The notes beneath the pieces are model-generated. The model saw only the letters and a list, made by a program, of their open reading frames with translations, ran no database searches and was not told the origin of the DNA. From Convolutriloba macropyga (taxonomy: Eukaryota), in the NCBI RefSeq assembly GCF_964194025.1, contig NC_134477.1, positions 11,160,001 to 11,224,000 of the forward strand: a stretch of DNA of 64,000 nucleotides, in the 5' to 3' direction. How positions within the stretch are numbered: the stretch's first letter is position 1; each line of letters opens with the position of its first letter. The translations under genes and the position numbers were made by a program. Of this stretch, positions 1 to 27,700 are shown one piece after another.

Positions 1-176
1 AAGGTTCAATGCGCACTATTTACGGCAAAAGTCGAGGCGTAGTTTTTTAACTAACTTGTTTCAGATTCGAAAAAAAAATATATTAATTCGGCGAATGAAA
101 TAAACACTGAAAGGTAAGAATATCTGTTATTGCACTTTAGATTTCGAAACCACTTGGAATATTGGAACTCAAATCA

Positions 177-279
177 ATGACGACGTTGTTCACAATTTTT
201 GTGGCAGCCTGTCTCTTAAACCAGGTTGTGCATGGAGGGTGGCTTTCGAAAGAAAATGAAATTCTCGCACAGGAACGAG
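177..279 (+). CDS. Secreted peptide precursor gene A, first coding exon (MTTLFTIFVAACLLNQVVHG-GWLSKENEILAQER), signal peptide
   Basis: hydrophobic N-terminus; upstream acceptor ttgcactttag at 140; phase-1 donor G|gtatt; paralogous exon at 13196-13298 with 25/34 aa identical and about 7 synonymous changes. Confidence 0.72.
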
Positions 280-805
280 GTATTATTTTCTAAAATGCTG
301 TTTCTTAGCTTTAATTGGTTATGAATTTTTGTCTCTGTGAAAATTTTCAGCTAATTTTTTTTACCGATACATAGGATATTCCTGATTTTAAAATGATAAC
401 GTGACAATGAGGAGAGGACGGGAACTTTTTTGAAAATTGAGCATCAGTAATCAAAATCATGTAAGGTTTTGATCTTTGAAGAAGTGACGACAAAAATTAT
501 AGCGCTATAAAATTGCGATGGGAACCGCTAGCTGTAGTTTGCATAGCATAAGGAAAGAGATTACTCACTACTTCGAATTTAAGAATAAAAAAAATGGCCA
601 CACTAACCCAGTTATATAAAGTCTTCGACTAAAAGTTTTTATACGCGTTTGTAATTTGACAAATGCTTTAAGGGAGAAATTTTTTATTATGGTTTTACAA
701 ACTTTAATAAGGTTTAAAAAATGCTGACAAGAAATTTCCTCAGGTTACCTTAATAAGCTATTGCCGACCCTCGGCGGTGTTTTGGGTCATTGTGTGATTT
801 TTCAG

Positions 806-868
806 ATTTTACAAAAGATCAGGAAATAGAAAGAACCTGCTCGTCTTATCGAACGTTAGGGGCCATTG
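806..868 (+). CDS. Putative internal exon of gene A (DFTKDQEIERTCSSYRTLGAI)
   Basis: tttttcag acceptor, G|gtacgt donor; 63 nt, phase 1-1, open in the required frame. Confidence 0.45.
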
Positions 869-1384
869 GTACGTACGAGTTTAAACATTTAATGATATCG
901 GATGAAATTTAGTAGTTATTTACCACAGCCCCCATATTGCTCGGATTTGTTCTGCATAAGACATACAAGCAGCGTTCCTATTTCCCTTATTTAGTAATCC
1001 AAGCTGAAAAATAATGGATAAGTTACAAATAATTAAAGATTGTTTGGAAAATAATTACCTCACTCAAACGCGGCGAGAAATTACTGCTTGGCCTATATAT
1101 CAAGATTAAAAAACGTAGATTTTTCTTACGAGTCCGAGTCAATTTACTCTCCTCTTGTTTGCGCCAATTTCACATAGTGACGGACTACATATGTGGTATA
1201 TCATGTTTCCATTCTGTGAGAGCAAACTCACACTCACCCTAACCTTCCGAAGGAAATTGGTGGTATTTTTTCGAAAATAATTTATACTGAAGATTCTGAG
1301 CATAAGAAGCATTACGTTACCAAACCTACATTTTGAGCAAGCAAATTTTCTTGCAAATGTCAGCATTTTCCGCTACCACATGTT

Positions 1385-1565
1385 GAATCTTTTTCAATTG
1401 TGCCCCTCCCCCCATCTTAGTGGGTGCATATTATTTGCACCCCCCCCCCCCCCCCTACCCCCAGACGCACGTGCCAAATTTTTACATAATGATTTAAAAT
1501 GTAATGAAACGTGCTCTGTAACTGGGGGAGCATAACGTACTGAGGGGCACAAAAGGAAAAGATCC
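1385..1565 (+). mobile_element. MITE family 1 (GGATCTTTTCC TIR, 8-bp TSD), copy a
   Basis: TSD cacatgtt at 1377-1384 and 1566-1573; homologous to 29564-29729. Confidence 0.85.
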
Positions 1566-1757
1566 CACATGTTTTAAGATTAGGCTTTATAGGGTGTTCA
1601 AAGGGTGTGCTAAGGGTGATCAAACCCAAAATTTGTCTGTTTTTCTAGCTGGGACGTGGGGTGATTGTAGGGTGAAATTCCAGCTAAGGCTTTGCAGCAC
1701 GAGCAGCACGGTGACCAAATAGATGGTTCCAAATTTGCTATTGGTGTTCTCTTCTAG

Positions 1758-1975
1758 GGGAGAGAGAAGATTGTTGGACCAAAAACGCCTTTTACGTCCG
1801 ATTCGTTGTATGATCTCAACGCTAATAATGCTAACACAACATGTTTTACCTGGCCAAGACCAGGGAGATGCATGAGGCCAGAAGACCCCGATACCACCAT
1901 CACATGGAACTGGTCCAACTCTTGGAGAATGTTGTTGGCTTTATAATAACCTGCAAAGTGTTAGAAAATAAAATA
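1758..1975 (+). CDS. Putative terminal exon of gene A; frame uncertain (phase 1 gives GEREDCWTKNAFYVRFVV*; phase 0 gives a 62-aa frame GREKIVGP...TCFTWPRPGRCMRP...LAL*)
   Basis: ttctcttctag acceptor at 1757, higher-GC sequence, AATAAA at 1967-1972. Confidence 0.4.
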
Positions 1976-2030
1976 TGTGTTTATCGGTAATTGCTGTTTT
2001 CGATCAGAGTTGACGTCGGATCCCGGGACC

Positions 2031-2125
2031 AGGTTTCACCCTTAATCCACCCCTAATTAGCTGGGATTAGGGTGTAATGCGTATTCCACTCCTATTTATT
2101 GGGGAAAAGAGAGTAAGAATAATTT
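2031..2125 (+). repeat. Dispersed repeat; inverted copy at about 48706-48798
   Basis: tttcacc.ttaatc..ccc.taatta...gggattagggtgtaatg matches the reverse complement at 48.7 kb. Confidence 0.6.
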
Positions 2126-2899
2126 TAAGATAATCATCGATCCGGGATGCTGGTAGAGTTATTCAAAGAGGACATCTGTTAGCCCGTATTACCTTTTAAT
2201 TAACATTTAATAATTTTTGATTGCGTGCAGCAAATTTGTAATGTTGTAGGGTTTTTGTTGTTTTCTTTATAAATTGTTGTTTAGTATGTCTCTCAAACGA
2301 ATTGGTTTGGTCACTGATTGAGTAAAAAGTTTTCTAAATGTTTTTTTTTCCAGATCAATTTTTGTGAAAAGCGGCGTTAGCTTTCTGTAGCAGTTTTTAT
2401 TAATAATTTTTACTAAGCAGTTTTTACTAGCAGTTTTTATTAATAATAGTTTTCTTTTTTCTTTCTTTCTTTTTGCTCAGTTTTTTCTGTATGTACCGTT
2501 TCTGTTCTTTATTTCTCAGGTGGTAGTTAATTATTGTATGAAAAAAATTTTTGTTACAAATTTTTTGCCATTAAATGTTTTTCAGTCGCAAATCGTAAAT
2601 ACTGTTTTTCAATAACTTTCAGATTTTAGACTGTGTTATCAGATTTGGCTTTTCTCAAGTTACTCTGTCATTGCCGCAAGATGACTACTGTAATCAAGAA
2701 TTCTTTATCACAAAATTTAACGCTGCATTTCACAAAAATTGTTCTGAAAAAAAAAAAACGTTTAGAAAAGTTTTTACTCGACTAGTGACCCGGCCAATTC
2801 GCTTGAGGAGGTGCAATTATTTTGATTAGTTGACTCGGATCAAAGTAAATCTACTTCGAATCGGTTCCGGAGACTTTGGGCTACGTTTTTCACATCAGT

Positions 2900-3800
2900 A
2901 TACACACTGTCTGTTCATAATAACCTACAAACAGTCTCTTTGTGGTAATCTACCAACAATTCTTTGTGCCAACGGTCCCTTGAATCGTGGTAGTCTACCC
3001 CTAGACTTTTCATGGACTAATCTACCACGGTCTTTTCACTGTAGTCTATCTGTTCATGGTTTTTATATTAAATTTTGTCATCTACTAATTGTCTTTTCAA
3101 TTATTTTGTTTCATTTTTTTTAGGGTAATCTGTCTCAAGTGTTTTCATTCTAATGTGTATACGTATGATAATTTAAAATAACAGTTTTAACGATTTTCTC
3201 ATAATGTTACAACAAACCAAAAAAAGAACCAATTACCAGTTATGTGCCATAACTCCCTTGACTAAAACTATAACTTCGTTTTTAGCGTATTTTATTAATG
3301 ATTTGTATCAAAATTGACCATAATTTTTTCACATCTTCTCTTCCACCGCTGCATCATACGTATACACATTACTCTAATATAGTCATGCTCTTTCTATTAA
3401 GAGTAATACAAAGTATTACAACGACAATTTTTTCCACAACAGTCTATCAACTCATTATTTTTCAAAAAATGGCTTCTCAATGTCAATTGACGTGCTTCAA
3501 GATGTTTTCATTGTAATTTACCGACGGTATCTTTCAATCAATATACGTTTGTCCCTCAATAGAAAACTTCTGACGGTTTTTTCCTAATAGACAAATCACC
3601 ATTTAATCAATGACATCTATCTACCCCCTGTATTTTAATGGTAATCATTTTACTGTCTTTTTGACCCATAGTCCTTTAATTTCAAGCTGACGCCATTACA
3701 GATTTTTTTCATAATAAGTCACCCACGGATTCCTCATATTAATTCATGTGCCACCTTGGTTGACCTTTCCCCGTAATTCTTCAAGGATCATAATAAATGT
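2900..3800. repeat. Highly degenerate short-period tandem repeat (..tcatggtaatctacc..)
   Basis: recurring TTTCAT/GGTAATCTA motifs; boundaries approximate. Confidence 0.45.
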
Positions 3801-4887
3801 CATATAACGTATTTCCTAGAACGATCATTGCTTGCCAACGATCATTGCTAGAACGATCATTACCAAGTAAATCCCATCTATATTCCCTGCTTAAAAACAA
3901 AGAAATCACAAAAAACTGCAGCACGAAGTTTGAAGAACTTTACTATATCGCGAGAAAGATTTGAACTAATGTCTGATTATTGACTAACGGAAATAGTCAG
4001 AAATGGAGACCTTAATGCACCTACTTTCAAAAGACATTTTCAAAATTAGTTACAAGGATCTTAAATTGAATCGGATGTTTTAAAATGATCTATAGGAAAA
4101 AGTCCCAATGTGGCGCAGAGTTGATAAGATATCCCTTGTTGATAAGATATCCCTTTTTTGCATAATCACTTTTTTTGCATAACTCTCTAGATTGCACTAT
4201 CAACTATTAATTTCTGTTCGAGAAACCGCTGGGAGTATCCGAAGCAAATTATACGCATTGGAGAAAACTACTTGTGCTGTTTGAACTAAAAATTGTGGCG
4301 CCTTTTTTGGCAGACAAAAATAAAGACTCCTTAGCCTATCCTAGTAAAAAACGCATAGTACAGAAAAAACTTAATCATACAAATACCAACCCACCACCAG
4401 AATCATCTTAAAAAGTATCTCTTTTTGGCAACTGATAATATCCCAAGGTTCGTGATCGTTCACTTAGGGCTTCTTTGGTTTCTCTAGATAACTTGACAAC
4501 TTCGTGTCGACTAGTTGAGGCATAAGGCAATTGTAACGTTAATTGCAGTTTTCGCAATAAATTTTGCAATGAATTTTGTTTAAATTTTTCAAAAAAAAGT
4601 CATTGTTGATGTGTCATGAACATAATAAATTTATTTTTGTATTAAAGTAAACATTTTAACAAAAAAATCTTGCAAAATGTCTTACCAAGTGGATTTGAAA
4701 ACTGGATTTGAGTTTTTCTGATTTTTTAAATGACTTCTGACAGTTTCTGCACTTTGCCTTTTTTGTGTCTAACAATTAAAGGAGATAACCCTCTCTTTCT
4801 CCTTCTCTCTCTTCTCTCTCTCTCTCTCTCTCTCTCTGACAGACTCATACAACACATATTATTACAAAACACAGACAATCATACATA

Positions 4888-5418
4888 NNNNNNNNNNNNN
4901 NNNNNNNNNNNNNNNNNNNNNNNNNNNNNNNNNNNNNNNNNNNNNNNNNNNNNNNNNNNNNNNNNNNNNNNNNNNNNNNNNNNNNNNNNNNNNNNNNNNN
5001 NNNNNNNNNNNNNNNNNNNNNNNNNNNNNNNNNNNNNNNNNNNNNNNNNNNNNNNNNNNNNNNNNNNNNNNNNNNNNNNNNNNNNNNNNNNNNNNNNNNN
5101 NNNNNNNNNNNNNNNNNNNNNNNNNNNNNNNNNNNNNNNNNNNNNNNNNNNNNNNNNNNNNNNNNNNNNNNNNNNNNNNNNNNNNNNNNNNNNNNNNNNN
5201 NNNNNNNNNNNNNNNNNNNNNNNNNNNNNNNNNNNNNNNNNNNNNNNNNNNNNNNNNNNNNNNNNNNNNNNNNNNNNNNNNNNNNNNNNNNNNNNNNNNN
5301 NNNNNNNNNNNNNNNNNNNNNNNNNNNNNNNNNNNNNNNNNNNNNNNNNNNNNNNNNNNNNNNNNNNNNNNNNNNNNNNNNNNNNNNNNNNNNNNNNNNN
5401 NNNNNNNNNNNNNNNNNN
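4888..5418. other. Assembly gap (531 N)
   Basis: N run. Confidence 1.
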
Positions 5419-6805
5419 ATAAAATCAACGAAGAAAATAAAAAGCAATTTTTATAAGTTTTCTTTTGAGTTTTTGACTCTGCCCACGATTCGCGTCGTTC
5501 ATTTATGTCTTGATTGTTTCATGTGGAGAACTAAGTGTGAACTACTTGAGGCAATTTTTTTTGTTATATATAGAATTGGCACCAAAATTTGAAATGACTT
5601 TTTGATTTTTCTTTTCTTTACTGTTTTGTTAGCCTAATGTACCAATTCGTTTCTTCAAGTTTCTCAAAAACTTCTAATCAGCTAGATTTCATTATCACAA
5701 TTTTGGTTTTGAACATATTTCAAACAGAAATTTGTATGAATTATGAATAAGTTTTTAAAGTGATTGGACAAGTTTTGCACCCTGACACTTATTATGTCAC
5801 ACCTATAAGGAAGTGATAAAGGATGTTTTTAAAGGCCCTTGTTCAGTAGCTATAAAGAAAGTTGGTTACAATTAAATTTTACGTTCCGGCGGTTTCACTA
5901 TTTGCAGTATTTTTAATGAAATAGAGAATTTTACCATTCTTTATGTGAACTGGGAAAAGAAGTTTTTTTATCTTTCAAAAACACTCTTTGTTTTTAATAT
6001 TAGGGCCTTCAAATAATAAACTATTCATTTTTTCATTTCGTCTCGAAAGGATAATTCGAAGAGCAATTTCAAAAAACAGAAAAAACTGAACATTATTTAA
6101 TTTTCCAACCTGGCGATCAATAAACTCTCGAACTCTCAAATTCTTTTCAATTGCATTCTGCTAGATGAGGTTGGTTCAAAAAATCTGCTCTGAAAGTATA
6201 AGGAACACAAATAAAAAAGATAAGAAAAAATTTTCATTTTTTTTAATAATGAGTTTGGTTGAACTGATGTTCATTCAATGAAACCCGTTTTTTTACCTCT
6301 TCGCGTTTTTGAAAAAAACCTAATTGTTTAGTTTCGATGAAATAAAAAGTATTGTTTGAAAAAACAACTTTAGAATTTAGACAGGAATAGATAATTTCCG
6401 TTTTTTCTTTTTTTTTACATTTTCAAAAATAATTTTTACTATTTAGAAAGCTCTAAAAAGCCTCAAGGTTTCAATTTTCCGGAGAAAATTTGTTCGACAG
6501 AGAACGATTGGTTCTTACAGTTTTTTTATTTTTCATCATCAGAAAACAGAAAAGTGGAAAAAAAATTGAACAAAGTTGTGAAGAATTAAACCAAAATAAT
6601 AGACTTTTTCGAAATTTTTGGCCAAAAAGTTAAAATCTTTATTTTTAGGCTTGAAACTGTAGAGAATTTGCTGTGAAGATCAAAAATCCCTTTAACCTAA
6701 CTTCTTTTACTACAAATTTCTCCGCTTGTATTTGATTTCGATCTCCCCCCTCCCCCCGAGCAATGTTTTTTTACGAATTTTCCTTTGAAAATTTAAATTG
6801 TCCCG

Positions 6806-6809
<4 letters not shown>

Positions 6810-6878
<69 letters not shown>
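6810..6878. repeat. (CT)n microsatellite; another at about 4791-4837
   Basis: direct observation. Confidence 0.95.
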
Positions 6879-6882
<4 letters not shown>

Positions 6883-8483
6883 TAAAATAGGTTTTTTGAT
6901 TGAGTTGGTCACCATGCTGAAGGAGATCCAATTTTTGCGAGATAACTTTTGTGTTGCTCATTTGTATGTGACCTCCACAAGTTCATGATCCAAAATGCAA
7001 GTCGTAGCTACAGTACAAAACAGATATCTTTTTCCTTTTCCATTCTGCCATGTTTATAGATGGAAAAAATCTGAGCTACAGTTTGTAGATTTAGAGTTTT
7101 TCGAGCACTTTGTCTGTATATGTGGTGACCAGCATATGTTTTTCTAATTGTAACCTCGTTAAGACACCGTAAATCGTGGCGTTGAACATTGTCTGAACAA
7201 CAGTTCATTTCTTTCTGGTAAGTTGATTTAATTCGTTTTCAGTGTGAAAAAACGTATTTGAGGTCACAGAACAAGTCAGAAGAGGTCAAATCAGATGAAT
7301 TGTATCAAAACAAAATAGTGATCTCTGATTAAACTTTCCTAAACCAATATGACCTCTGATCAGACTTTCATTACCCAATGATCCCTACTTTTTATTATCC
7401 ATACACAACTATGGATAAACCAACTCTAACGATTTTACTTAGTTAATCCTTTTACCGTGTAATCAACCTGCGCTGGAATAGCAACAATTGCATATACGAT
7501 TTGCTGGTATTTTTGCGTTCAACCGATTGTGTTGGTTGATGAGGACGAAATTTTGAAGACCCGATTGTGAGGGTTTCTGGGAACAAACAAGGCAAAGACT
7601 CAATTGCGTGGGTACCATGGTGATTTGTGGGTACAAGCCTGATCGTAATAAAACGTTCTGAGAATCGACTGAACTTAGAACTGATTTCAACCATGAGTTC
7701 CCCAACCAAGCATACCTTAAATTTATGATTTCAATGTCTAAAAAAATTTAATGGGTACCATAAAATACTATAATGAATGTCAATTTATAATTTGATTTCC
7801 CATTTTGCTGGTATGAGTCGTTAACTGCATACGGATACTACCAAATTATTTAACAGTCGATTACTGAATTATACTGCAAGATTTGATTGCTATCGAGAAG
7901 TTATTGAGCTTCGAAGCGAAGCCAATTTGGTAATAAAAAAATTGGAGAGCGCGGTAGCAACCATGTTCTTATCTGTTTAATCAATTATCGTTTTGAATAA
8001 CTTGCGTCACTGTATAGTTGATGAGATTACTTTTTCCACCAATGCCACCTCACCTCGCCATATATGAAATGTTTCCGAGAAAACACTACCAATAAGACAG
8101 CAGTCTTCTTCCAGCGCAGAGTTTTGCCAGTTTTGTTGCAGAGTTTTGATTCAGTTTGTCGAAATATTCATTAGTCATCTGAGGTTATTGCTGGCGAGTT
8201 GAATAAAACTAATGAGTGGTTAGACCAAAAGTATACGCCACTTTTTATTGACAAATGCGTTCTACTAGAAACATCAATTTAAAACACGATTATAACTCAC
8301 CGTATGACCAACTAAAGTTGGGTATGTAGAGCAAATTGTAATCGCAACGAAAGCTGACTTTCGCTAAACATCATCACATGATTTCTGTCGCGCTCTCGAA
8401 TTTACTCAACATCTCATCTTCACCAGATTTTGACAGTTTTCAATGGCTGTCGATGGTAGTAATAAACGCAGTATCCATTTTAA

Positions 8484-11303
8484 TTGTTCCGACCCCTCTT
8501 GAGGGGGGAGGAACTATATACTCAAATGGGTTTTTTATTGTTCAGTCAATTTTCGCTGATCGATATATTCATCGTAGAGAGTTGAGACTGGTATCACTAG
8601 AAAGCTCGTCCAGCGTAGAATATGGAATTAAAAAGATCTTTTTAATTTTCGTTTCTACAGGGAGTTATCGAGGTTTAAACTTCTGAAAACAGTAGAGTGA
8701 ATTCACTTTGTTTTATTCACATTTTTGCCTAATTTTTCGTCAATTTTGCTAAAATTTGTTGAAATTTTTAAGAATAGTGTCGTTGATTTTTTTTACCGAC
8801 AAAAAGCCCTTGTTGATTAATCTTATTTAATTTTTTGGTCGAAAAATCTGGATAAATGTTTCAAAATTCAGTATTTTTCATCAAAAGCAGCACGAATTAA
8901 GCTACTTTAGTCCACTTTGATAAATTTTGCCGGCACTACACCCTACACCCCCAAACAACAATAATACAATATTTGTAGACTCAGAAGGGGGCTAATGCCA
9001 CTTCAACTTTCGCTGAGAGTGCTCTGTAATTAAAACTTTGCCGTTTTTTGCTAGCTTTACTCGTTTATTTTCAAAAATGCAGAATTCTTTTTTGAGTTTT
9101 CAACTAACAAATTATCTATATCTACAATATTCGAAATATCAATAGTTCCTAACGGACAATAAGCATTAGCAGGGGTAGTTTTAGGTCAATTTTGGCCTGT
9201 TACAATCCAAAAAGAATTCGGATGGCAATCAGTCGGTTTTTTTTTTGAAAAAAGACCTTTTTTTAATAATAAAGAACAGAACATATCAAATGAATGCTCA
9301 GAAGTGATAGGTCCAATTGGTCTCCTACGCAACTCCAAGCTAATGCATTTAGTATCTTACTTGAAAGTTTCTGATTGTTTCGACTTTTATAAATAATTGA
9401 TTTTTAAGTAGATAATGGCTTAATAAACTTTTCCTCCATTTTTTTCTTAATTTGGTCAACTTTCAGCTTAGTGTCAGCAAAGAAAGAATGCTTCTTCATT
9501 CTACTGATTTAAAACTTAGTCTTGATTGCGTTTTTAAGCCTGAAGATATTGTTTTCTTCACTTCAGGCGTTTTAACGGCCTCGACACTTCTTTCTTCAAG
9601 AAATTAATTGAATTTTTTAAATTTTGTCTTTAACTGTCATTTTTACTTTGTCATTTCAGTTTTATTAAATTTCCTTTATAGTGATAGATTTCACTGACTT
9701 TTTGTGGAAGAATAGACGAGCCGATATTCTGATATCAGAAGATAGCTGATGGCTTTCATGACTTTGAAAACAATCGTTTTCCAAAACTAAAAATAAAAAT
9801 TTCTTTAATTTCTCAAGTTTGTTCTTTTTATTTTTCCTTTTGGTACCTAATCTCCTTAATTACAGCTCAAATATGACATTGTGGGGGTCATGTGAAGGCT
9901 TCAAAAGGGATAGATTTCCCAAAATCTATTTTTTTTTAAAGAATGCGTTATGACCTTACTGACTTCGACACCGGTTTTTCATAAAAAAGTAAATTAATTT
10001 GATTTTTGTAATCTTTGACGTTCTTTTTGTAGACGCAAGAATTTTTCTGGATAACTGCAGGTCCCAAAGAATTCTTTTGGATGAATAATTGATCCTATGT
10101 AATGTTTCATTTTGTAATTAATGTTTTTCATGAATTTGGATATAATTTTGTTTCGAAAAGAATCAAAATTATTACCTACTTTTGCCCTTTTCTCTTTTTT
10201 GTCTACTTGTTACCTAATCTCACTCATAAATGGCAAATACTACATCATCGGTGTTTAAAGAAGGCGCAAACAAATATAATTTGAGTGTCGAAATATGGCT
10301 TGACGGTTTTGACAGCGTTTTCTGGCAAGTTTCAATTGAATTTTTGTTTTTTTTGTTGTTCTTTTTACCCGCTTAAAGAAATGAATAAGGACAGGTCCTA
10401 ATGCTCTTTTATAGAAGCATTGATAATCGTTAACCTTTGGGATATTTTACTTGATTTCTAATGGTTTTAATTACTTTGTAGTTAATTGTTTTAAAAAAAT
10501 AAGCGAATTTTTTTAACTTTACTGTTTTTGTTCTTTTTTGTCTAATTGTTACCAAACCTTTTTATGGACTGGTCCATATCTTTCGCTGGTGATTAATAAG
10601 TCATTTTGTTTAGTTTTTGGTTCATCTGACAGCATGTTGACTCCTTTATTAAATTTTGTTTTTTAAAATGAACAAAAAATTTTTTATGTAATTAAAGTTT
10701 GTTGTTGTTGTTTGATTTTGCTGTTCGTCTTGACTCGTTTTCTTAATATTGGCAAATCACAGCAATTTACTGCTTCAATTTTTACTCCACTGAGTTATTT
10801 GCTTTGGAGGCTATCTTATCGTTTGCTTTGGAGGGGTCGAAACCTTATGTGCCATCGCACATTGCTGAGCCCACTTGTTTTAGTTAAATCCTTGAAATTT
10901 TGCTGCAAGTTGTGCAATTATTGTAATTGCAGTGGAAACTGGAAAAAATATTCTGCAGGCTTGCTACCACTTCCTTGTAGTCATTTTGAAGAATTATTTT
11001 TGACGTAAAAGCGATCAACAATAATCAAGGAAATTTTTTCTGCATGAACAAGTTAAAATTTTTGATTTTGGAACGTCAATTAATGTTTAGCTAAAAATGG
11101 AATTTCATATGAAACTCCTTGCGGATAATTTTTTACATAAAAATCCAAAATTGGGTCTGTTCAATCTTTTTACTCTGTAAACAATTTTCAAGATTTTGAG
11201 AAAAAAAATAAACCCAAACAGTCAACAGTGAAAGTGTGAAGTAGGAACAGGAATTTCAACATAAATCTCCTCTCAAAACCAGCCGTGAGAGGCTGGTGTT
11301 TTT
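8484..11303 (+). mobile_element. Helentron-type non-autonomous element (HINE/DINE-1 architecture), copy 1
   Basis: 5' TTGTTCCGACCCC...GGGG..GGAAC foldback; 3' GTAGGAACAG (degenerate subTIR, 11241-11250), then hairpin ACCAGCC-gtgaga-GGCTGGT (11278-11297) and a T run; colinear homology with 36452-41300. Confidence 0.7.
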
Positions 11304-13195
11304 CCATTAAAAATGATTTTTCGCGCAGTAAGATTTGCATTGATCAAACTAAACATTAAATTACGACGCCATGACAAACACTACTAGACACAACAAAATT
11401 GAATTAAGATTATTCTATTAATCGTTTTGAAAAACGGTCTCCTAAAAATGGACACAAGTTTTTGTTTATTCGAAATAGTTAATGCAGAAAGAGAAACGGT
11501 TTTTTATTGAAGTAGATGAGCATTCATCTTAATTGAACACTTTTGCCGCAATAACATCTGCTCTTTTGTGAAGCGCATGGAACCAAATCTCAAGAGGATT
11601 CGGGAGTAATTTGGACTGAATTTTCACCAATATCTTGTCACAACTTTGACAATCGATGGAAACTAAGCTGGATCGATTAGTAAAAAATTCTGAAAACTGA
11701 AGACAAGCTTAATGGGATATTAAAAGGGTTGTGGATTTTGAATTTCCTTTTTTGAACTCAAATCGAGGTGCTCGACTAAACTCTGATATTAATTTTAAAT
11801 CTGGGGATATTAAGTTTAAAAGGTTTTTAAATGGTTACTACAGGCAAAGGGAAGTTAAACGAGTCATTGAAAATTTTAAGAAATTGCAAATTTAATAGGT
11901 TTCAAGACAAAATGTTCCGGGATAATTCTTTATAAAGCTATCTAATTTAATATTTTACTTGAATCTTTTCTTGTGTGTAAGAGAAATTCATTTAGCCTAT
12001 AAGGATAAACTCAGTTTTGTTTGTTTGACCTCCGTGCGGAAAAAATCAGCACTAGAAAAAATCAGCTAATAGGAGATGAAATGTTTCGACGTCTAGGTTT
12101 TCTGATTGAATTAATAAGTTTTACGTAGAAGGTAAATAAATTTTTAAATACTATCCTGAATAATATCTCAGTACAAATGATGAATTTTTGGATTTGTTCT
12201 ATTCGATTGATTTGAATCTGTCAATTGTGTTCCAAAAATAAAGTATATTATTACATATTCAGTTAGCTCATAGACACATTTACAGAAAAATTGGCTTTAG
12301 TTTCACATTTGTATTTTTTAAGCATCTTGATCAAGCTTTATCAAAGCATTTGTTCTGGTTGAAATACTTCTTATGTTTCGACTTCGGAACAGCAAACAAA
12401 AGAATTTCAAAAAATCAAAAACATTTTTCAAATTTTTTTTGGTTGGATTACTTCTCGCAAATGCGCTCATTTATTATAAAAAGGAGATGAGTCAGAACGT
12501 CGCGCATGAAAAACCAAAAACGCAAACGTTGATGACTATTATCCCCCCCCCCACCTCTATGCGCTGATAAGAAACGGAAAATTGTCTAGTTTTGAAAAAC
12601 CTCAACCCTCAGCTTGGGTGATTATTATCACAGCGCGACTACAATTAAAGACAAGAGTTTGTCAGAGATGCTGTTAAACTGAGATGACAAGGCAGATACA
12701 GCTTAAAAAATCCGAGGTGGTTCTTTTAATCCATAAAATATAAAATCAAAATTTGTTTCGATAATAAAATTTTGGTTAAACATTTATATTTTAAGAACCA
12801 CTTTATAATAACATATGAATAGTTTATGTCTCTAAAAGTTTGAATAGAGATAGTGAACGCAAAAATAGATTGAGAATACATAAGTTTTGAGTAGCAAAGG
12901 AATGGGGGTTGACGATGCCATTTGGAATGGCCTGAGTTTTAGGGAACCTTCGCTTAGGTGACTCATTCAAAAAACAACGGAAATATGTACTCTTGAATTT
13001 TGAGTAATCTATTTTTCATCTTATTCATAATTCTTCAGGATGTAACTTTTTCCAAAATGTGACCTTATTTTACTTAGTGACAGATTTTAACGAGATTGGT
13101 TCAATAAACTAACTGAATACTGAAACAGAAGGAGTAATCGATATTGCATTTTAGATTTTGAAGCCGAGAAGACGTCTATATTGGACCTCGAATCC

Positions 13196-13298
13196 ATGGT
13201 GATGATGTTTACAATTTTGGTGTCTGTCTGTCTCTTGAACCAAGTTGTGCTTGGTGGGTGGCTCTCAAAACAAAATGAAATTTTCGCACAGGAGCGAG
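13196..13298 (+). CDS. Secreted peptide precursor gene B, first coding exon (MVMMFTILVSVCLLNQVVLG-GWLSKQNEIFAQER)
   Basis: paralog of 177-279 with the same length, upstream acceptor (ttgcattttag, 13154) and phase-1 donor G|gtaac. Confidence 0.72.
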
Positions 13299-13580
13299 GT
13301 AACTTTTTTAAAAAATTATGTTGTCATTTCTCTGGTTGTCTTCTATCTCCGTGAAATCCTTGAACAAATTTTTTACTTTGATGAGCTGATGTAGATGTAT
13401 TTTTTCTCTGGTATTACAGTAGTGTTAACTGGGTGGAAAACTAGCAAGATTCTTACACGAATTTGTAAAACAGAAATCTTGAAAAGAAAATAAACATGTG
13501 CTATGTTGCTCTGAAAAGTATGTTTGGAATGTTAAAGTGTACCCTGCAATTAATAATAAATTTTAAGTACTTGTTCATTT

Positions 13581-14384
13581 TTACGCGTCAGAAATTGTCG
13601 GTACGCTTGGTTTCAAACGTAAGAAATGGTGGATATGTTTGGTCTCTTAAATTCTGTATGTTAGGTCTCTTAGATTCGGTATGTTTGGTATAAAACGTAA
13701 GATAAGCGTTGCTATGCTCGGCCTCTCAGATTCGTTACGTTCCCTTCTAAACTTAAGAAATTGTTCGTATGCTCGGTCTCTCAGTTTTGATACGCTCAAT
13801 TTCTTAGTTGCCTTATGTTTGCATTGAACCGCAAGAAATCGCTGATTTTTCTAAACAAAATTCGAGTTTTTTTTGGTTTTAAAGGAGTCAAAGGTTTATG
13901 AAAGGTTTCTAATCAACGGAGTTCTTTTCGTACTCATTGGAGACAATTTCTTCAAAGAAGTTGAAAATTTATGACTGTTTTATAGCTAAATTATAAAACT
14001 AGTTGGAAAAAATGTATCCTGACAATCTAATAGACGTGTTGAACATTGTTGGGAATTCACTTCATTAAACCATATTAACTGAGTTGCTTAACCATTAAGA
14101 GAATTCCAGTACATAAGTAAGAGAATTATGAGAAATCCCGTACGTAGTGTGACATCGACTGTAGTGTAGGTTTCTTACGTTTAAAGCCGAGTATACTGAA
14201 TCTTAGAAACCGATCATACCGACAATTATCTTACTCTTAAAACTATAAACATACGTAATCTAAGAAATCGAACATAGCGATGATTTCTTATGTTTGGAAT
14301 CAAACATAACGACGATACCGAAGAAAAAAGTTTTTGTCAACGAAAATTAAACATACCGACGATTTTCTTACGTTTACAAACCCC
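13581..14384. mobile_element. Degenerate foldback element with internally repetitive arms (AAACGTAAGAAA..GTCGGTATG units), in the intron of peptide gene B
   Basis: 13590-13800 repeats appear inverted at 14170-14384; a related fragment lies at 46461-46530. Confidence 0.6.
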
Positions 14385-14737
14385 GATTTTTGTACTAAGA
14401 AAGGTGAGTGGAGAAAATATAAAATGAAACAAAAGTGCCCAGTGCATCAATCAACAGTTTTTGCGCCAATTTTCCGGCAAAGTTCCTATTATTATTCCTG
14501 GAATCCGCAAAGAAAAAGGATTGGTAATTGGTGGTTATGGTAAGTTATGGTAGAAACCTTAGATATTTAGCGGGAATACCGGGAACGCGTTTGGGACTTT
14601 ACCAGGAAAAGCGCGAATACTAAAGCTGTTAATTATAAGGACTGGCTGGACTTATTACCAGTCATCATAATAACAGAATTTTAAGAAATGAGATTGAGTA
14701 ACTTGAGTAGATATTGATTTTTTCGATTTGTGAACAG

Positions 14738-14853
14738 GTATAATCGATCGTCATCGTCATCATCACGTGAAGAAAAGAGACCTTCAATATCCCACAAGAC
14801 AAATTGGGCCTATTGAGAGAATGACACCAGATCTGCCCGCAAATGACAACTAG
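14738..14853 (+). CDS. Putative terminal exon of gene B (GIIDRHRHHHVKKR-DLQYPTRQIGPIERMTPDLPANDN*)
   Basis: acag acceptor at 14737, open in phase 1, KKR convertase-type site, TAG at 14851-14853, ATTAAA shortly downstream. Confidence 0.55.
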
Positions 14854-16589
14854 ACAATTTAGATAGTCATAGAGAAGGTGATAACTGATTAATGAATTAA
14901 AAAATAGAACTAATCAATACCAAAACGGCAGAATTAATTATTTTAAGTTTTTTAATATCAATCATTGAGTTCGCAATTACGTGTTTATTGGTGATTACAG
15001 TTTTCTGTCAGAATTGGTGTCGGTTCCTTCTTCCTAGTGACTTTTTTTAACGTGTTTACAAAACCTGTCCGACACCAAATAACACTGATTTCGTGTAAAA
15101 TTAGTTCACTTTATGAACTGATTTTTTTTATTAAAAAAAACCTCCAAAATGTTTGCTTGTTGTTGACAAAGGTTCCCAAGTTATCTCTTGTTCATGAAAA
15201 AAAAAGCGTTTTAGACTAAAATTCTTAAGAAAAAACAGAAATTAAAATGTAAACAGAATAATTTTATTGAGCAGAGAGTTCGGAAACTCAGTCCTAGTCG
15301 AGAGGTCGCGACTTAGTGAAATTACCTATATAGCTAGATAATTTACTGGAGCGAGGCGGGATGTTGATAACGTAAACCCTTACAATTATCTCATAAATAA
15401 GTTATTGTGTGAAGTTTTTTAAGATATGTTTAAATTAATCGGTAAAATGATGTCACATTCTTGAACGATCCTTCAAAATAATCATTCGGAGTTGTTTTGG
15501 GTTCATTAAACTAACAATGTCGAAAAGACAAATCTTGATAACGATCGGCCATTCATTTTTCACTACACAAACACGGCTCTTACATAATGGAGAAAGTGAA
15601 AACATATATCTACAGCAGATTCAAGGACAACAATCAAGTATGCTTTGAAGCCATCAAATTTTATTAATAAATTAAATATTTTCTCGAAACTTGTTATGAA
15701 GAGACAATCAGATGAGTTCCGGACATTTTTTTAAACTAAGCTTGATGCTCATTTTGTATCAGAAAGCCTATCTTGACATTTCTTAATGTTTAAAACTTTA
15801 ACTAGCAATTAACTAGGTTAACATAACTATTTCGATCAAACACGACATTGGTTGATCTTTGCTCTGCATTGTGATTGGACAGCCAAATTCGAATCATAGT
15901 CCCATTCATGCAGCTTACTTATAGTAATGTTCAGTTACGCGGACTTTAGTCGCAGAGCCAATCAGATCTGTATCAGTATAATCCACTTTAAAACAGAACT
16001 GTCGCATAGTATTTTCAATAGATCAAGTAAATCTCTGTCTACACAGAGTACGAACCAACTGCCATTATTATTTTATTGCATTATGCGCAACTTGCTGTTA
16101 TATTTCTGATTATGACCAAAACCATAAGCGTTTTCATCTGCTCAGTCTTTCAGATATCTCATACTGTACAGAAAACGAAAATGAAAATTTCGAAATATGA
16201 GTATGAAATGAAATCGTGGTTAACATAACTTAGATTAAAGATAGGAAGTGGAAGATAAAAAGGAAAGTAGTCAACAGTACCTAGTGAGGTTAATGGTCCA
16301 CACAACAGGTGTGTGCTACAACTGCCCAATCGAGAAGAACTCTTACAGAGAGGAAGTTTTGAATTGAACTCAAAATCCCTCTTTTCTTGACGGGAAACGC
16401 GGCAGCAGAAAAACATCTGACCCAAAACCATTATCAGAAATGCAATGCAAGATTTTGGACGAAATAGTCTTGCTAAGGATTCTGAGGCGAAACCCTGAAG
16501 TCACTTTATCAACTGATGGAACAGGGCTACGATGAAGCGAAACCCTAGAAACAAGGTCGCCTTTGTTTGGCATCTCCAATTGGGCATGG

Positions 16590-16822
16590 AGCAACAAAAA
16601 GCACGGCAACTAAACACGGCCCTCACCTCCAACTATTTTCACTCCCCACCCACCAATAACGCAATACCCCCCCACCCCAAAAAAAAAGATAATCCCCGTG
16701 GCCAGTTGACCCCCAATATTGTCGCCTCCCCATCAGCCCCACGGTACCCCTCCCACCGTGGCAAGCTAAAAAACGAAGCCAGCCGGTCGCTTTAATACAA
16801 TTTGCCCGACGTTAGTCGGCTA
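16590..16822 (+). repeat. Dispersed repeat ending in a CCGAC-nTTA-GTCGG hairpin; inverted relative at about 31711-31935
   Basis: shared cgaagcca...caatt.gcccgac.ttagtcgg and a C-rich body; boundaries approximate. Confidence 0.45.
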
Positions 16823-18013
16823 TGTTATTTATTGTGTTTGTTTTAGTTGCTTCATTTGACATGTTTTCTCTATGATGTTTTCCTAATTGACACAGTCATT
16901 CTCTGCTTTGTTAACTGCTGGCCTCTTTGATGTGTTCGTACCGTGCTTTCAATTACCACTCCCAGTTTTTGTTTCATCCGTTTCAGTGGTATGGAGATTT
17001 AGTCTGGTGATTGGATCTCTTTTCCATCTTTGTCGCTGTTATAAGACATTTCGGACAATGCGGCCATGTGAGCGACTCTGAATTGGCAGGAAGAAGTCCA
17101 TATATGTTGAAAACCCTGCCAGGGGTTACGGGAAGATAGGCATTTTGTCCTGCAATACGGGGGAATCCCGAAGGTCGCCTGAGAGTTGTGAACAATATCT
17201 AAAAGAACAATCAGTCATTTATTTTTTGAAAAAACAGGAGGAGTAAAGGCAACAGGAGTGAGGACAACAGCAGGAGTGAGGGGGAAGTGAAGAGGAATGA
17301 AATTGAACTTCATTTAATTACAAAACATGCTTTTAACTGTTCTCTCGGGGAACATTCATTTAGTAAACATTAAATGCATGATTGCTATAAAAGCATATTT
17401 AGTTTTTAATTAGTTGTTCCTCTATCATATTTCTCGTCCTACAAGAGTGGCACTTCAAGCACTTTGCAAAATTTAGTTGCCCCAAAGCGAGAAATAAGAG
17501 TAGTTTGGCGGAAATAAATATGCTCAGAAGAACGAAAGCCGGTGTTTGGTCATGCACAGTTCAATGGCAGTCGGCAATTAAATCTGCGCAGATTGATAGA
17601 AGCCGTTAATTACTCATGCTACCTCTAATGACAGCCTGTAATTATCCATGCAAAATTAAGCGATATCAAGTTTTGTTGTCTTCCGATTAAAACTTCTATA
17701 AAGGTCTGTAATTTCTAAAAGATGACAAGAACAGAGTTAGGGATATAAAAAAAAGTTTGTTTCAAAAAGAATCAGTACTGATTTCCTCGGCCACAAAGAT
17801 CCGGGTAACTGTTTAAATGTTTGCTTACTAAACAGACTAAAAGCCGATCGTAGGCTTACGTGCAGACAAATTGAAAAGTATAAAAGGGAAGCCCTCTAGT
17901 GCGTTATAAAATGACTTTGGGCAAAAAATTAGATAATTTCTGTGTTTTTGATTATTAATGAATTGGAAATGTCGGAAATTAACGCAAACGTATATGAGTT
18001 GTATGAAAAGTTG

Positions 18014-18212
18014 NNNNNNNNNNNNNNNNNNNNNNNNNNNNNNNNNNNNNNNNNNNNNNNNNNNNNNNNNNNNNNNNNNNNNNNNNNNNNNNNNNNNNNN
18101 NNNNNNNNNNNNNNNNNNNNNNNNNNNNNNNNNNNNNNNNNNNNNNNNNNNNNNNNNNNNNNNNNNNNNNNNNNNNNNNNNNNNNNNNNNNNNNNNNNNN
18201 NNNNNNNNNNNN
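18014..18212. other. Assembly gap (199 N)
   Basis: N run. Confidence 1.
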
Positions 18213-20384
18213 NTAGCAGTCGCTATTACAAGATTGTTTTAAATTGTTTATGTGGACAATATAATCCCAAGATCGGTTGTGATAGTTTTATATCCAGTCC
18301 CACGGGCCCCTTTTGGTTATATAGTCGGCTAATCCCATGTTCGGTTGTGATAGTTTGATATGAAGTCCCACGTGCCATTAAATTAGATAGTCGTCTAAAT
18401 AGTCGTTCTGATACTTTTAACAATAGGGTGAATTGGCATTGGGTAAACGGCAGGTTGGGCAAAATGGAATTGGACGAATTGTCCTGACACCGTTGAAAAA
18501 ATTCTATGGTAGTAGTTAATTGATAATACTCAATAATTGCCTTGCTTCAAAAGTTTCCTGATGCAGCGTTTGAATTATTATGTCAAAATATTACAGAGCC
18601 TCCTTTATAAAAATTAGTGGTTTCTGCGCAATTGCACTGGAACACTATTCGTGAGCAGCGGAATATTCTCAGCTGCCCTATTTATTGTTCCTCACTTGCG
18701 TTTGAAACTTTCACGTGGTACCATTATTGCAGTCAAGACAGCCAAGATTGATCAGGCTTTACTTAATTTGAAGCCTAGGGTCAAGTGAGGTCAAAGCCTC
18801 CCACGAAGCTTCACAGAGGCAGTGGATTGAACTCTCATCTGTGGCGTGTGACACTTTAGCTCTAGGCTCTTGTTTCTCAAAGAATGACTCAAGCCCGGAG
18901 GATATTTGAAAAACAATTCTATAATGAGAATATAATTTGTCAGAGTAAAATACACTATCGATACAAAGTGTTGATGTACAATATAGACTACAATGCGGTT
19001 ACATTTATTATATACAATTTTTTAGAAGAATATACGCATTTCTGATATTTTAATTATTGAAAATAAACTATGAGTGTACAACAGATATTCAAACCCTATC
19101 ATTTCAACCCTCTCGCCGATTTTTATTGCTTATAGGTGATTGATACAATTATTATTTGCAATAAAAGATACTGGGTAAAGAATTGAGGGATTAATGCTTG
19201 AAAAGATTGGTAAGGTTCGAAGAAAAAGTTTTCGGGTAAAAACTTGGCGGGGTGAAGTAGGCTTAGGGGTAAAAAAAAGTGTGATGTTAATATACGGGGG
19301 GTAAATAAATCGGGCTGAACAGAAGTAGAACTATATTTAAACTGGACATCATAAATTCAGATACAACACTGCATACAAGTATTATATAGCAAAAAATCAA
19401 ATACTTTTCCTAGTTCTCGAATTGCGATTATCGGTTTTCTCCCGGCTACCAATACCAGTTAAAAAATTGTTTCTTTCTCATGATAGCAGATATTTTTAAT
19501 CGATATCTGATTACCTCTTTCATAAAATGAGATCAAGATGGGTGCACAAACCTGCATTTCGTTTATTAATTGCATTGACCGTATCATTATTAAACCGTAT
19601 CTTATGAGGCTAAGCGAACAATTATCATTACAAAATACATGTGTTTGTTTAATTGGGGGAGGGGGTTCTTGTTCACTAAGCGGGGGGGGGGGGGGGGGGG
19701 GCTTTTACAGGAAAGTCCCGAATTATTTATAAATAATAAACATCACCAGCACATTTTTTGAACCTGAAACGTAGAATATACTGAAATATGCATACAATTT
19801 TTTAAATCCTCAAATATACAACCAACCTTTAAAAATGATAATTTGACTACATTTTGTCGAAATTTACTACATTTTGACGAAATACCAATTTTTTTGTCGA
19901 CATTTGCTTAAATGAAGCATGAAGATATAAGCTAAATTAAAACTTTCTCAAAAATATTTCTTCAATTTGTTTGCGGCTAAAATGAATGATTTGATATAGT
20001 GATGGTCAAATGAGTAGGCTAAGAATACATTTTATTGATTATACAGCATCAAACCTCATGTCAAATAAAATCGACAGTGAAAATAAGATAAAGACATAGT
20101 TTAACAGAATTTTTGAGAACACTGCATGAAAATGTTCCTTTGAAAGGAAACGTTGGGGCCATTTTTAATTTACTTGTACGTTTGAAAACCAACAGCCAAA
20201 CATGAAACAACATTTATCCTTATATGTTTACAAACTATACTAAGTGAATTAATAATACGCAATCTGTAAATGTTTAACCTTTGGTTGTATTGGTGAAATT
20301 TACATGCTTGAATTGGAATAAAAGAAGCATCATGAAATATACAGAAAGTTATAAATTTTCAAGGTCCCGTGTCACCTTTTCTGA

Positions 20385-24700: not shown

Positions 24701-27700
24701 CATGTTATGCTAATAAATGTTTCTATTAACATTTGCTGGAGTTGAAATACCCCTCAATTGGTATTAAGTTTTCGGAGTTGGTTATAATTTTGGCTGCTAA
24801 AATCTGCTGGTCTTTATTTCTGCTTTTATTGAAGAAAGTGAATAGTTGAGCGAATTCAAACCTTTTATTACGATTCAAAGAGGAGCATTGGGGAAGTGTC
24901 TTTCCTTAACCAATTTTATTGGAGTGAATTTTGAAGCAGAAAATTTTCGTTCACGTCCCTGTTTTTTTGATTAAATGTTTTGCAAGCAAGTGAAAATTTT
25001 CGTTCACGTGCCTCTTTTTAACGCAGTTTTTTTTTCATATTTTTGATTAAAAGACTTGGTTGTGATATTTTATTAATTTTAGGCTACTTTTGATAATTGC
25101 TTGAAGGTTTCTGGAAAATAATATGAATTTTATGCTAGATTGTAGCTTTTTCTGGTATTTTGCTGAATGTTAGCCAAATTTTTGAGATTTTTTGCTTGTT
25201 GTTTTGTTTTACTACCCCCAGGAAGAATTTGAAAAGACCTTTATTACTTGAGTACCAAGTGGTTATACATCTTTAAATACCAAGGGTTTACAGTTTTGTG
25301 GGTATAAAACATTTTTTTTTTGAGAAATATGACAAAAGAGTCGAAAAATTTTAAACTATTTTTTAAATTTTTTTTGCTGTTTTTCGTTTTGTCTATAATC
25401 TTAGACCAGTTATTTTAGCCTCATATCACTTGCGTATTGTATTGTGAGCATTTAAATACTCTATTGGTTCAAAAGAATTTTTCTTTGGCTTTTTGTGGCT
25501 TTGAAATAAAAAAAATATTAATTTTTTCTATTTTTTTTTAGTTAAAGTTGCTTTTAAGAGCTTATTTTTTCATGATTTGTGTTTTCAAGTGTGTTTTTTT
25601 AAATTTCTCATGAGTGGTTTTAGTAGGTAGTAGTTGTTTTGAAGGAGTAGGTTTAAGGTAGAGACGGCTCTTTGAGTCGTTTCCGGCTTTCTTCCGGCTA
25701 TGTTTTAAATTTTCGTCTTTCTGTCCCTTTTAGCATCAACTTGCCGGTAAGAAAGGTCAGGCATTATCTACAAATTCACTATATACAATGCATTCTGTTT
25801 AACGTGTACATTTTCGACAGTGATACAATGTAGTACAGTAATCATGACTCGTGCAACTTTGTCTTGAGTAGTTGGTTTTCAGTTCTCATTGGGCGAGATG
25901 AAAAAGTAGGGAAATTCCGAATTGATTTTCTCGGCTGAATTAATTCAAAACTTCCCTATCATTGAGTGAGTTTGCATCAACACATCTAGTGCGTTTTAGA
26001 TTAGTACATACCTCGAAATCGAATATGAGATGGTCGATAGGAATTGTATATCGTCTTGCATAGTTCTGCTGTACTCCAGTCAAGAATGCCTGAGTGAAGT
26101 AGAATCGAGAGATCCAAAACACAACAGGAGGTCCATTCTCAAACCACTCCTAAATAGAAAGTCAGCAGTCCATAAAGTTACGTGCATAATTCCCGTTTCT
26201 GCCCCCCCCCTCAAGTTCTTTATGCCCCACCCAGTTACAACGCACGTGTCATTGCATAGTAAATCATTATTTAAAATATGGCGCTTTCGTGTGGGGCGCC
26301 AATAGTATGCACTCCCTAAGCTGTGGGGCACAATCGGAAAAGAACCAGTTACACTTTTTTAGTAAGTCTACATATTAAGCGGAAATTCGTCATATATAAT
26401 AGATCATGAATGAAAAATAAAATAGGTAAAAAATCAGCATGTACCAAGAAACAACAGCAAACAAGCTTGAATTGACTCAGGCAGTTTATGAAAGAGCTAC
26501 TTGTTAGATCCGGGCAAAATAACTACCCGGATTGCAGTTTCGTTGATTTCATAGAAGGATCATGTATGCTCCATATTGTCCACACTTGATTTCTTAGTAC
26601 GATCCTAGTATGACCCCAAAGAAACCATATATGATCCTTGTATGATTCCCATAGTCATTACCTTGACAATAACTTGACAAATGACTTCCGGAGACTCGAG
26701 ACTCACCATTTTTGTCAATTAATTCACAATGATTCCGAAAGTACAAGTAATGCTGTCTCCTTGTGATCACAAGTTTTAAAAAGGCGGCGGCCTGAAGAAA
26801 CTGATGCAAGTTATATTGCAGCGATACTGGTTCACATAACAGGTAGCGATGTAGAGCTTGGTAACTTAGTGATAGGAAACCGTTATAATATTTTTGCCTG
26901 TTTATAATAACTCTGGCTCTTAGGAGAACCCTCTAACCTCTAAGAAAGTGAGTCTTGCGCAAAAGTCGGACACATATCCACCCAAGGGCTTCAGAGACGG
27001 ATAACTCTTTTCCATCCACATTCTGGGGATTTTCCCGCTCAACATGCTCTGGAACACCTCTTCCAAATCGCTGGACATCACCACCAGACCCTGGATCAAA
27101 ACACTCGTTAATCTGAGCATTGTATCAAATTTACGTTTAAAATGAACACTTTTCACAATGATTTGAGCATGATTGTCTGAATGATCAGCGCAACCACTTA
27201 GTCACAGTTTTTGAATCTGTAGTCAATCCCATTAAGCTTAAATCCGCGAACGCTCCAAAAACGCCAAAACATGCAACAACGCGCACATTTGCACGCCAAG
27301 TTTTTTTTTTAATTAGCTTCATGTCAAGTACTTTTATCTACAATTTTTCAGTTTGCACTTTGACGTTTGAACTCTATCGAGTGATTTTTTTAAACGTTCG
27401 CATTTTTTTTTACTTTATGAGACACGATATATTTCCCTGAAACTGTTCAGAGAAGGCTTGTTTCCTCCGCTAGTGAAAATTCCCCAGTCGCTGTTGAGTA
27501 CAAAAGGCTTCGAAAACGTACCAAAAGGAGACACATGACACATACATAACACAGAGAAGGGGGTACCAACCGCAAATCATCAGCAGTTTAATATTTTGGG
27601 CAATCCTGAGAAAATTGACAAAGTGAAAATTTTAAATCACATAAAAGCAAATAAAATTTATTTTTCATATTTCTCGAGTAAATATAATCAATCAACTGAC

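Follow-up and report, generated by a model that had tools for sequence, protein, structure and literature searches.

Conotoxin superfamilies of Conus comprise tens of paralogues that have conserved introns and cysteine frameworks and in which an excess of non-synonymous changes has been measured, and frog-skin precursors of the preprodermaseptin type, a vertebrate family, carry a propiece that ends in Lys-Arg and a cationic mature peptide. Here, we analysed a 64,000-nucleotide (nt) stretch of the genome of the photosymbiotic acoel Convolutriloba macropyga (RefSeq assembly GCF_964194025.1, contig NC_134477.1, positions 11,160,001 to 11,224,000; hereafter the window, C10:11160001-11224000 in the 1 175 981 408-base assembly of 4 694 scaffolds that we searched). 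A sequence-only reading of this window had recognised two similar 103-nt exons, copy A and copy B, and had likened them to these families: each exon would encode a signal peptide and a pro-region and would be spliced to unrelated exons for the mature peptide, giving candidate products A and B. We confirm that the two exons are real paralogues under constraint and not a repeat, and we believe, with a probability of roughly 55%, that they are the 5' ends of two lineage-restricted paralogous genes for small secreted proteins, in which the signal exon probably accepts a spliced leader (SL). As a gene pair, they are plausible but unproven.

With conotoxin genes the locus has in common the idea of a conserved signal exon followed by dissimilar coding parts, together with small, here predicted, secreted products. 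In contrast to the conotoxin superfamilies, however, there are two copies with two (A) or no (B) Cys residues, the introns cannot be aligned, the downstream exons are candidates, and there is no sequence similarity. The likeness to preprodermaseptin-type precursors lies in a predicted signal peptide, a conserved and rather acidic segment and variable C-terminal parts, whereas the segment found here ends in Glu-Arg at the end of the exon and has a net charge of about -1, KKR occurs only in candidate product B, 14 residues after the conserved segment, and there is no homology. None of the hallmarks of the proposed architecture, that is many paralogues, a cysteine framework and a propiece ending in Lys-Arg, was found in the pair. 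Closer in animal group are the xenacoelomorph neuropeptide precursors (Thiel et al. 2018, PMC6188537), which are short and secreted, as is predicted for the pair, and resemble candidate product B in its one KKR; the locus differs from them in having no repeated peptides, no Gly-basic amidation signal (no G-K/R motif in either candidate product) and, in candidate product A, no dibasic site, and the exon motifs were not found in the supplementary sequence files of that study. With respect to transcription units rather than products, the nearest comparison is with SL trans-spliced genes of the Convolutidae, the family to which both C. macropyga and Symsagittifera roscoffensis belong; in the latter, 30.2% of genes are SL trans-spliced and a 32-nt leader has been published (PMC9911081). 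Similar to such genes, the two copies have an AG acceptor and a conserved upstream stretch shortly before the first ATG, no cis donor nearby and the same 32-nt leader in the genome, and we infer leader addition at 140/141 and 13154/13155.

The evidence for paralogy and constraint comes from the exons and their immediate flanks (Table 1). Both exons measure 103 nt from the ATG (at 177 in A and 13196 in B) to a conserved AG/GTA donor and end in phase 1; their equal length, phase and upstream acceptor had been described correctly, and the identity of 25 of 34 residues between the exon peptides, MTTLFTIFVAACLLNQVVHGGWLSKENEILAQER (A) and MVMMFTILVSVCLLNQVVLGGWLSKQNEIFAQER (B), was reproduced. At the base level, the coding parts are 83% identical without a gap, whereas the flanks, all with indels, reach 71% (the 34 nt that precede the AG), 64% (the leader) and 57-63% (the 90 nt that follow the donor), and identity falls to the background of 38-44% beyond an island at 107-369. 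The 18 base differences between the exons are distributed as 5, 4 and 9 over codon positions 1, 2 and 3, and by the Nei-Gojobori method they represent 8 synonymous changes, where about 7 had been counted before, and 10 non-synonymous ones. The ratio of non-synonymous to synonymous substitution rates (dN/dS) is 0.28 for the 34 codons (Fisher p = 0.022); the 14 residues that follow the predicted signal cleavage give 0.13. In neutral simulations, 2.8% of copies retain the AG, ATG and GT and an open frame together with 25/34 identity at the observed divergence of 17.5%, and fewer than 0.1% do so at a flank-like divergence of 25-36%. Whole-genome searches at the protein level, with either peptide and with a degenerate pattern, found only the two copies; pattern matches with three mismatches were at control level, and one of these (WFSKRNEI) has no signal-like frame. 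DNA contigs from four sequencing runs match copy A at 1-429, 630-963 and 1518-2045 with zero differences and at single-copy depth; being DNA, they bear on the correctness of the assembly and not on expression. Since there are two copies in the whole genome and the depth is that of single-copy sequence, the exon is not part of a dispersed repeat, a possibility that had been raised against it and that is ruled out; by the same count, the proposed peptide family has two members.

Table 1. Positions of the conserved and candidate features in the window, ordered along the forward strand.
Feature	Positions	Strand	Description
Copy A, conserved stretch 5' of AG acceptor	107..140	+	71% identity to 13121-13154, versus 38% further upstream
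Copy A leader, acceptor to ATG	141..176	+	36 nt, no upstream ATG; 64% identity to copy B leader, indel
Copy A first coding exon	177..279	+	MTTLFTIFVAACLLNQVVHG followed by GWLSKENEILAQER; ends in phase 1, then GTATTA
Copy A stretch 3' of donor	280..369	+	57-63% identity, indels; intron start, or unspliced tail and 3' untranslated region
Copy A candidate exon 2 (sequence-only reading)	806..868	+	63 nt, phase 1 at both ends; open frame between a canonical AG and GT; unique sequence
Copy A candidate last coding exon (sequence-only reading)	1758..1813	+	GEREDCWTKNAFYVRFVV, stop at 1811-1813
Copy A second conserved block	1961..2035	+	Collinear with 14965-15039; begins at AATAAA (1967)
Assembly gap or masked stretch between copies	4888..5418		531 N, adjoins a (CT)n run
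Copy B, conserved stretch 5' of AG acceptor	13121..13154	+	Counterpart of 107..140
Copy B leader, acceptor to ATG	13155..13195	+	41 nt, no upstream ATG
Copy B first coding exon	13196..13298	+	MVMMFTILVSVCLLNQVVLG followed by GWLSKQNEIFAQER; ends in phase 1, then GTAACT
Copy B stretch 3' of donor	13299..13383	+	Partly conserved; unspliced tail GNFFKKLCCHFSGCLLSP would stop at 13352-13354
Copy B candidate last exon (sequence-only reading)	14738..14853	+	GIIDRHRHHHVKKRDLQYPTRQIGPIERMTPDLPANDN, stop at 14851-14853; unique sequence flanked by repeat-derived parts of the intron
Copy B second conserved block	14965..15039	+	Collinear with 1961-2035

Upstream of the exons, the acceptor AG (139-140 in A and 13153-13154 in B) lies 36 and 41 nt before the respective ATG in the context TATTGCAYTTTAG/ATTT, with TTTAG/ATTT conserved between the copies, and the conserved 34 nt before it include ACTGAAA, a branch-point-like motif about 30 nt upstream of the AG. 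No conserved upstream exon was found within 20 kb of the acceptor. The S. roscoffensis leader, GCCTAATTGTTGTGATAAACTTATTAAATAG(A), occurs at 2 612 places in the C. macropyga genome with at most three mismatches (the 100 matches listed are all exact), compared with none for a reversed control. Given the presence of the leader in the genome and a conserved acceptor that lacks a conserved upstream exon, the acceptor is best read as a trans-splice site, and probably is one judging from these sequence features. Regarding the leader copies themselves, all eight that were inspected precede sequence resembling open reading frames (ORFs) and not an SL RNA intron, and three of the eight share the extension GATGAGCCAGCGAGGCATG; a GT directly follows the leader in only two of the inspected copies, and both of these also run into ORFs. 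The dispersed leader copies resemble reverse-transcribed mRNAs or transposon transcripts that had been capped with the leader.

Each copy is followed, at a distance of about 1.8 kb, by a second conserved, single-copy block, which is 77% identical between A and B over 53 nt (E ~1e-6 against a 3.2-kb copy-B region, by diagonal scan and BLAST) and falls on almost the same diagonal as the exons (offset 13004 versus 13014-13019). Because this block is collinear beside each copy, we take it that whole units of about 1.9 kb were duplicated and not the exon alone. The second block may belong to the 3' end region. We rejected it as a coding exon common to A and B: just one frame is open in the two blocks alike, a stop closes it four codons upstream in each, and copy A has no acceptor that is compatible with phase 1. 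It was likewise rejected as a structured RNA, with a folding term of -0.5 kcal/mol and a blank Rfam result; the Rfam search of positions 1-20 000 of the window returned no match. Inside the units, local alignments do not rise above those of shuffled sequence, except for two weak AT-rich patches, and the repeats that the interiors hold differ: those of A lie at 1310-1583, those of B at 13572-14004, 14166-14399 and 14518-14643. As these insertions contribute about 270 nt to the interior of A and about 790 nt to that of B, the equal length of the two interiors (1 591 nt) is a coincidence. A duplication unit of 13 kb was also considered and rejected, the sole further near-diagonal match (12396 versus 25332) being A/T low complexity.

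The position of copy B relative to copy A has to be read with the assembly in mind. From the end of conservation in unit A it is 2.85 kb to the run of N that separates the copies, and from this run a further 7.7 kb to unit B; the contig that carries unit B (5419-18013, 12.6 kb) is bounded by N runs at both ends, 531 N at 4888-5418 and 200 N at 18014-18213. Because of these gaps on both sides, only scaffolding places the copies 13 kb apart, in this order and in one orientation, so that of the tandem pair described previously the two paralogous copies stand, while their distance and relative orientation are to be taken as provisional. Every proposed exon and conserved block is more than 2.8 kb away from the gap, and we read no frame through it; the ORFs that span 4888-5418 are artefacts of translating N as X.

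Several further features of the window concern its repeats and neighbours. Very high-copy short repeats occur inside and just after unit A, at 1310-1583 and about 2046-2110, with at least 2 540 candidates in the genome at first look, and the k-mer depth of 1305-1630 and about 2046-2110 is 10^4 to 10^5, whereas unique sequence has a depth of about 20. Further copies of the repeat at 1387-1565 lie in the window at 26207-26296 and 29566-29729. In unit B, the putative intron consists largely of the repeat units given above, two parts of which are inverted, and these units form tandem arrays elsewhere in the genome, for example at C3:13.99 Mb, C9:54.64 Mb, and C13:8.75 and 9.00 Mb. Heterozygous differences and small indels are dense in the DNA contigs between 3053 and 4350, whereas none are among those listed for 1-963 and 1518-2045 in unit A; this contrast may be a haplotype-block effect rather than a sign of constraint. 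The nearest recognisable gene downstream of unit B, and convergent with it, is marked by a minus-strand exon at 26920-27153 with a match to the C-terminal domain of dynein heavy chains (PF18199, E 1.3e-18).

As for the predicted product, both N-termini pass a home-made signal-peptide heuristic with a cut after Gly20, as do about 6% of random ATG ORFs of the window. The 14 residues that would follow, GWLSK(E/Q)NEI(L/F)AQER, are probably helical. They had been taken for a pro-region, and this most conserved part of the post-signal sequence, with its dN/dS of 0.13, could equally be the functional part. The N-terminal motif WLSK also occurs in Ascaris cecropin P1; there is no match to the Pfam cecropin family at E values up to 1, and in copy A the segment holds three acidic and two basic residues. 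The peptides, which the sequence-only reading had not recognised, fall into no known family by protein collections, a profile search and Pfam: the ESM Atlas offers no usable match for the exon pair, Pfam returns no match above cut-off and only DUF5408, far below it, for the frame of copy A, and neither Pfam matches nor homologues were found for the candidate continuation products, spliced or read through.

Several observations weigh against the pair being working genes, and some of them favour the strongest rival explanation, namely that we are dealing with a conserved non-coding element, an exon of the minus strand, or decaying relics in which a frame has survived by chance. There is no annotation, and neither exon frame shares words with any protein of 28-133 residues in a collection of 5.8 billion clusters; a two-sequence profile compared with 1.84 billion representatives of any length also found no match. 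A run search with copy A listed four DNA-like runs from one study and no RNA run, which does not prove that the pair is silent; had it encoded a toxin or defence peptide expressed in abundance, the search would probably have picked it up, provided that RNA runs of this species are indexed. The downstream coding parts are not conserved between the copies, which is unusual under purifying selection, the statistical power of a 34-codon comparison is small, and the signal heuristic admits the fraction of random ORFs given above. In addition, the antisense frame is open in both copies with a dN/dS of 0.20, and the substitution pattern therefore cannot choose the strand: of the earlier statement that the exons look selected as coding, the constraint holds, while the opposite strand scores about equally. 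We nevertheless prefer the plus strand because of the conserved ATG, the conserved AG/GTA donor, the conserved acceptor region and the signal-like N-terminus, and when the minus strand is inspected, A lacks a start codon and homologous positions carry no splice signals. Moreover, the coding part is free of gaps while both flanks carry indels, both copies retain the ATG, AG and GT, an outcome that drift seldom produces, and neither the Rfam search nor the folding of the second block suggests an RNA element. We consider it unlikely, although deserving of serious attention, that the pair does not form working protein-coding genes.

If the exons are indeed coding, the question becomes what follows them. 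In the sequence-only reading, a signal/pro exon is joined to unrelated, fast-evolving mature exons as in conotoxin or frog-skin genes, through the junctions 279>806>1758 (73 residues, A) and 13298>14738 (72 residues, B), to yield toxin, defence or signalling peptides. These sites are all canonical and lead into frames that close, the second block follows the candidate last exons at similar distances of 213 nt (A) and 237 nt (B), AATAAA or ATTAAA hexamers lie 3' of the stops, and the candidate exons consist of unique sequence set among intron parts that derive from repeats; the stretch 1601-1900 is also GC-richer (0.46) than its surroundings, and alignment upholds the claim that the candidate downstream exons share no similarity. 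However, when YAG acceptors with a pyrimidine tract that lead into a phase-1 frame of at least 15 codons are counted, these continuations are one of 23 equally legal ones after A and one of 18 after B. A direct 279>1758 splice is in frame as well (52 residues), and within the GC-richer region another frame, entered by 279>1864, is open for 62 codons (1758-1943), for which no homologue was found. The restriction to two genomic members, the missing cysteine framework, the run search and the lack of Pfam matches and homologues count against these spliced products too, and fast evolution is not measurable on exons that cannot be aligned. We therefore regard this version as doubtful. The conserved island at 107-369 is at least as well accommodated by small ORFs of a single exon, in which the island is approximately the whole transcript and read-through of the donor yields 38 residues in A (tail GIIF, stop at 291-293) and 52 in B, with mature peptides GWLSKENEILAQERGIIF (A) and a 32-residue counterpart (B). 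Conservation extends about 90 nt past the donor and then ends, which suits a 3' untranslated region better than an intron, the read-through tails have G35 and F38 in common, AATAAA follows the stops after 293 nt (A) and 137 nt (B), and no unconserved exons are required. Yet a signal-peptide precursor of 38 residues would be exceptionally short, the AG/GTA donor is intact in both copies, the second block 1.8 kb downstream is left unexplained, and here again no RNA run was listed for copy A; on balance, we find the unspliced version improbable. Both versions are special cases of the reading that we prefer, and for this reason our confidences in the several explanations do not sum to one. By contrast, the two exons might be mutually exclusive alternative 5' coding exons of one longer unit, with shared exons downstream of copy B, as would fit their equal phase and length, their apparent position on one strand and the failure to find a conserved private downstream exon for either copy. 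This arrangement seems very unlikely to us, since a separate collinear block accompanies each copy downstream, the interval from 15 kb to the dynein heavy-chain gene (at about 27 kb) holds no plus-strand coding exon that we could recognise, neither exon occurs in any protein of the collections, and a splice from copy A would have to cross the assembly gap.

Under the reading that we prefer, of two paralogous genes for small secreted proteins, a unit of about 1.9 kb would have been duplicated in C. macropyga or a recent ancestor, giving rise to both genes. Each gene would start at the conserved acceptor, where it most likely receives the spliced leader of the species, and would continue with an untranslated leader of 36 or 41 nt that contains no ATG, followed by the 34-codon exon for a cleavable signal peptide, with a predicted cut after Gly20, and the conserved 14-residue segment. 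The remaining coding sequence could consist of the candidate exons listed in Table 1, of other exons or of no further exon, and we would expect a small protein or peptide that is secreted.

We know of no toxin or antimicrobial peptide family in Xenacoelomorpha, and the secretome, toxins and immune effectors of this group are almost undescribed; should the pair be expressed, the group would gain an orphan secreted peptide. According to a recent paper, major immune signal transduction pathways are missing from this group. It is a long shot that the pair represents the visible core of an acoel-specific secreted-peptide system, in which a conserved, SL-joined prepro exon is combined with unrelated downstream coding exons, but if true, this would be the first toxin- or defence-like gene architecture of the type 'conserved leader, variable payload' in Xenacoelomorpha. 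Finally, the pair, if expressed, would provide a clean small case of duplicated genes that retain their signal exon while the remainder diverges.

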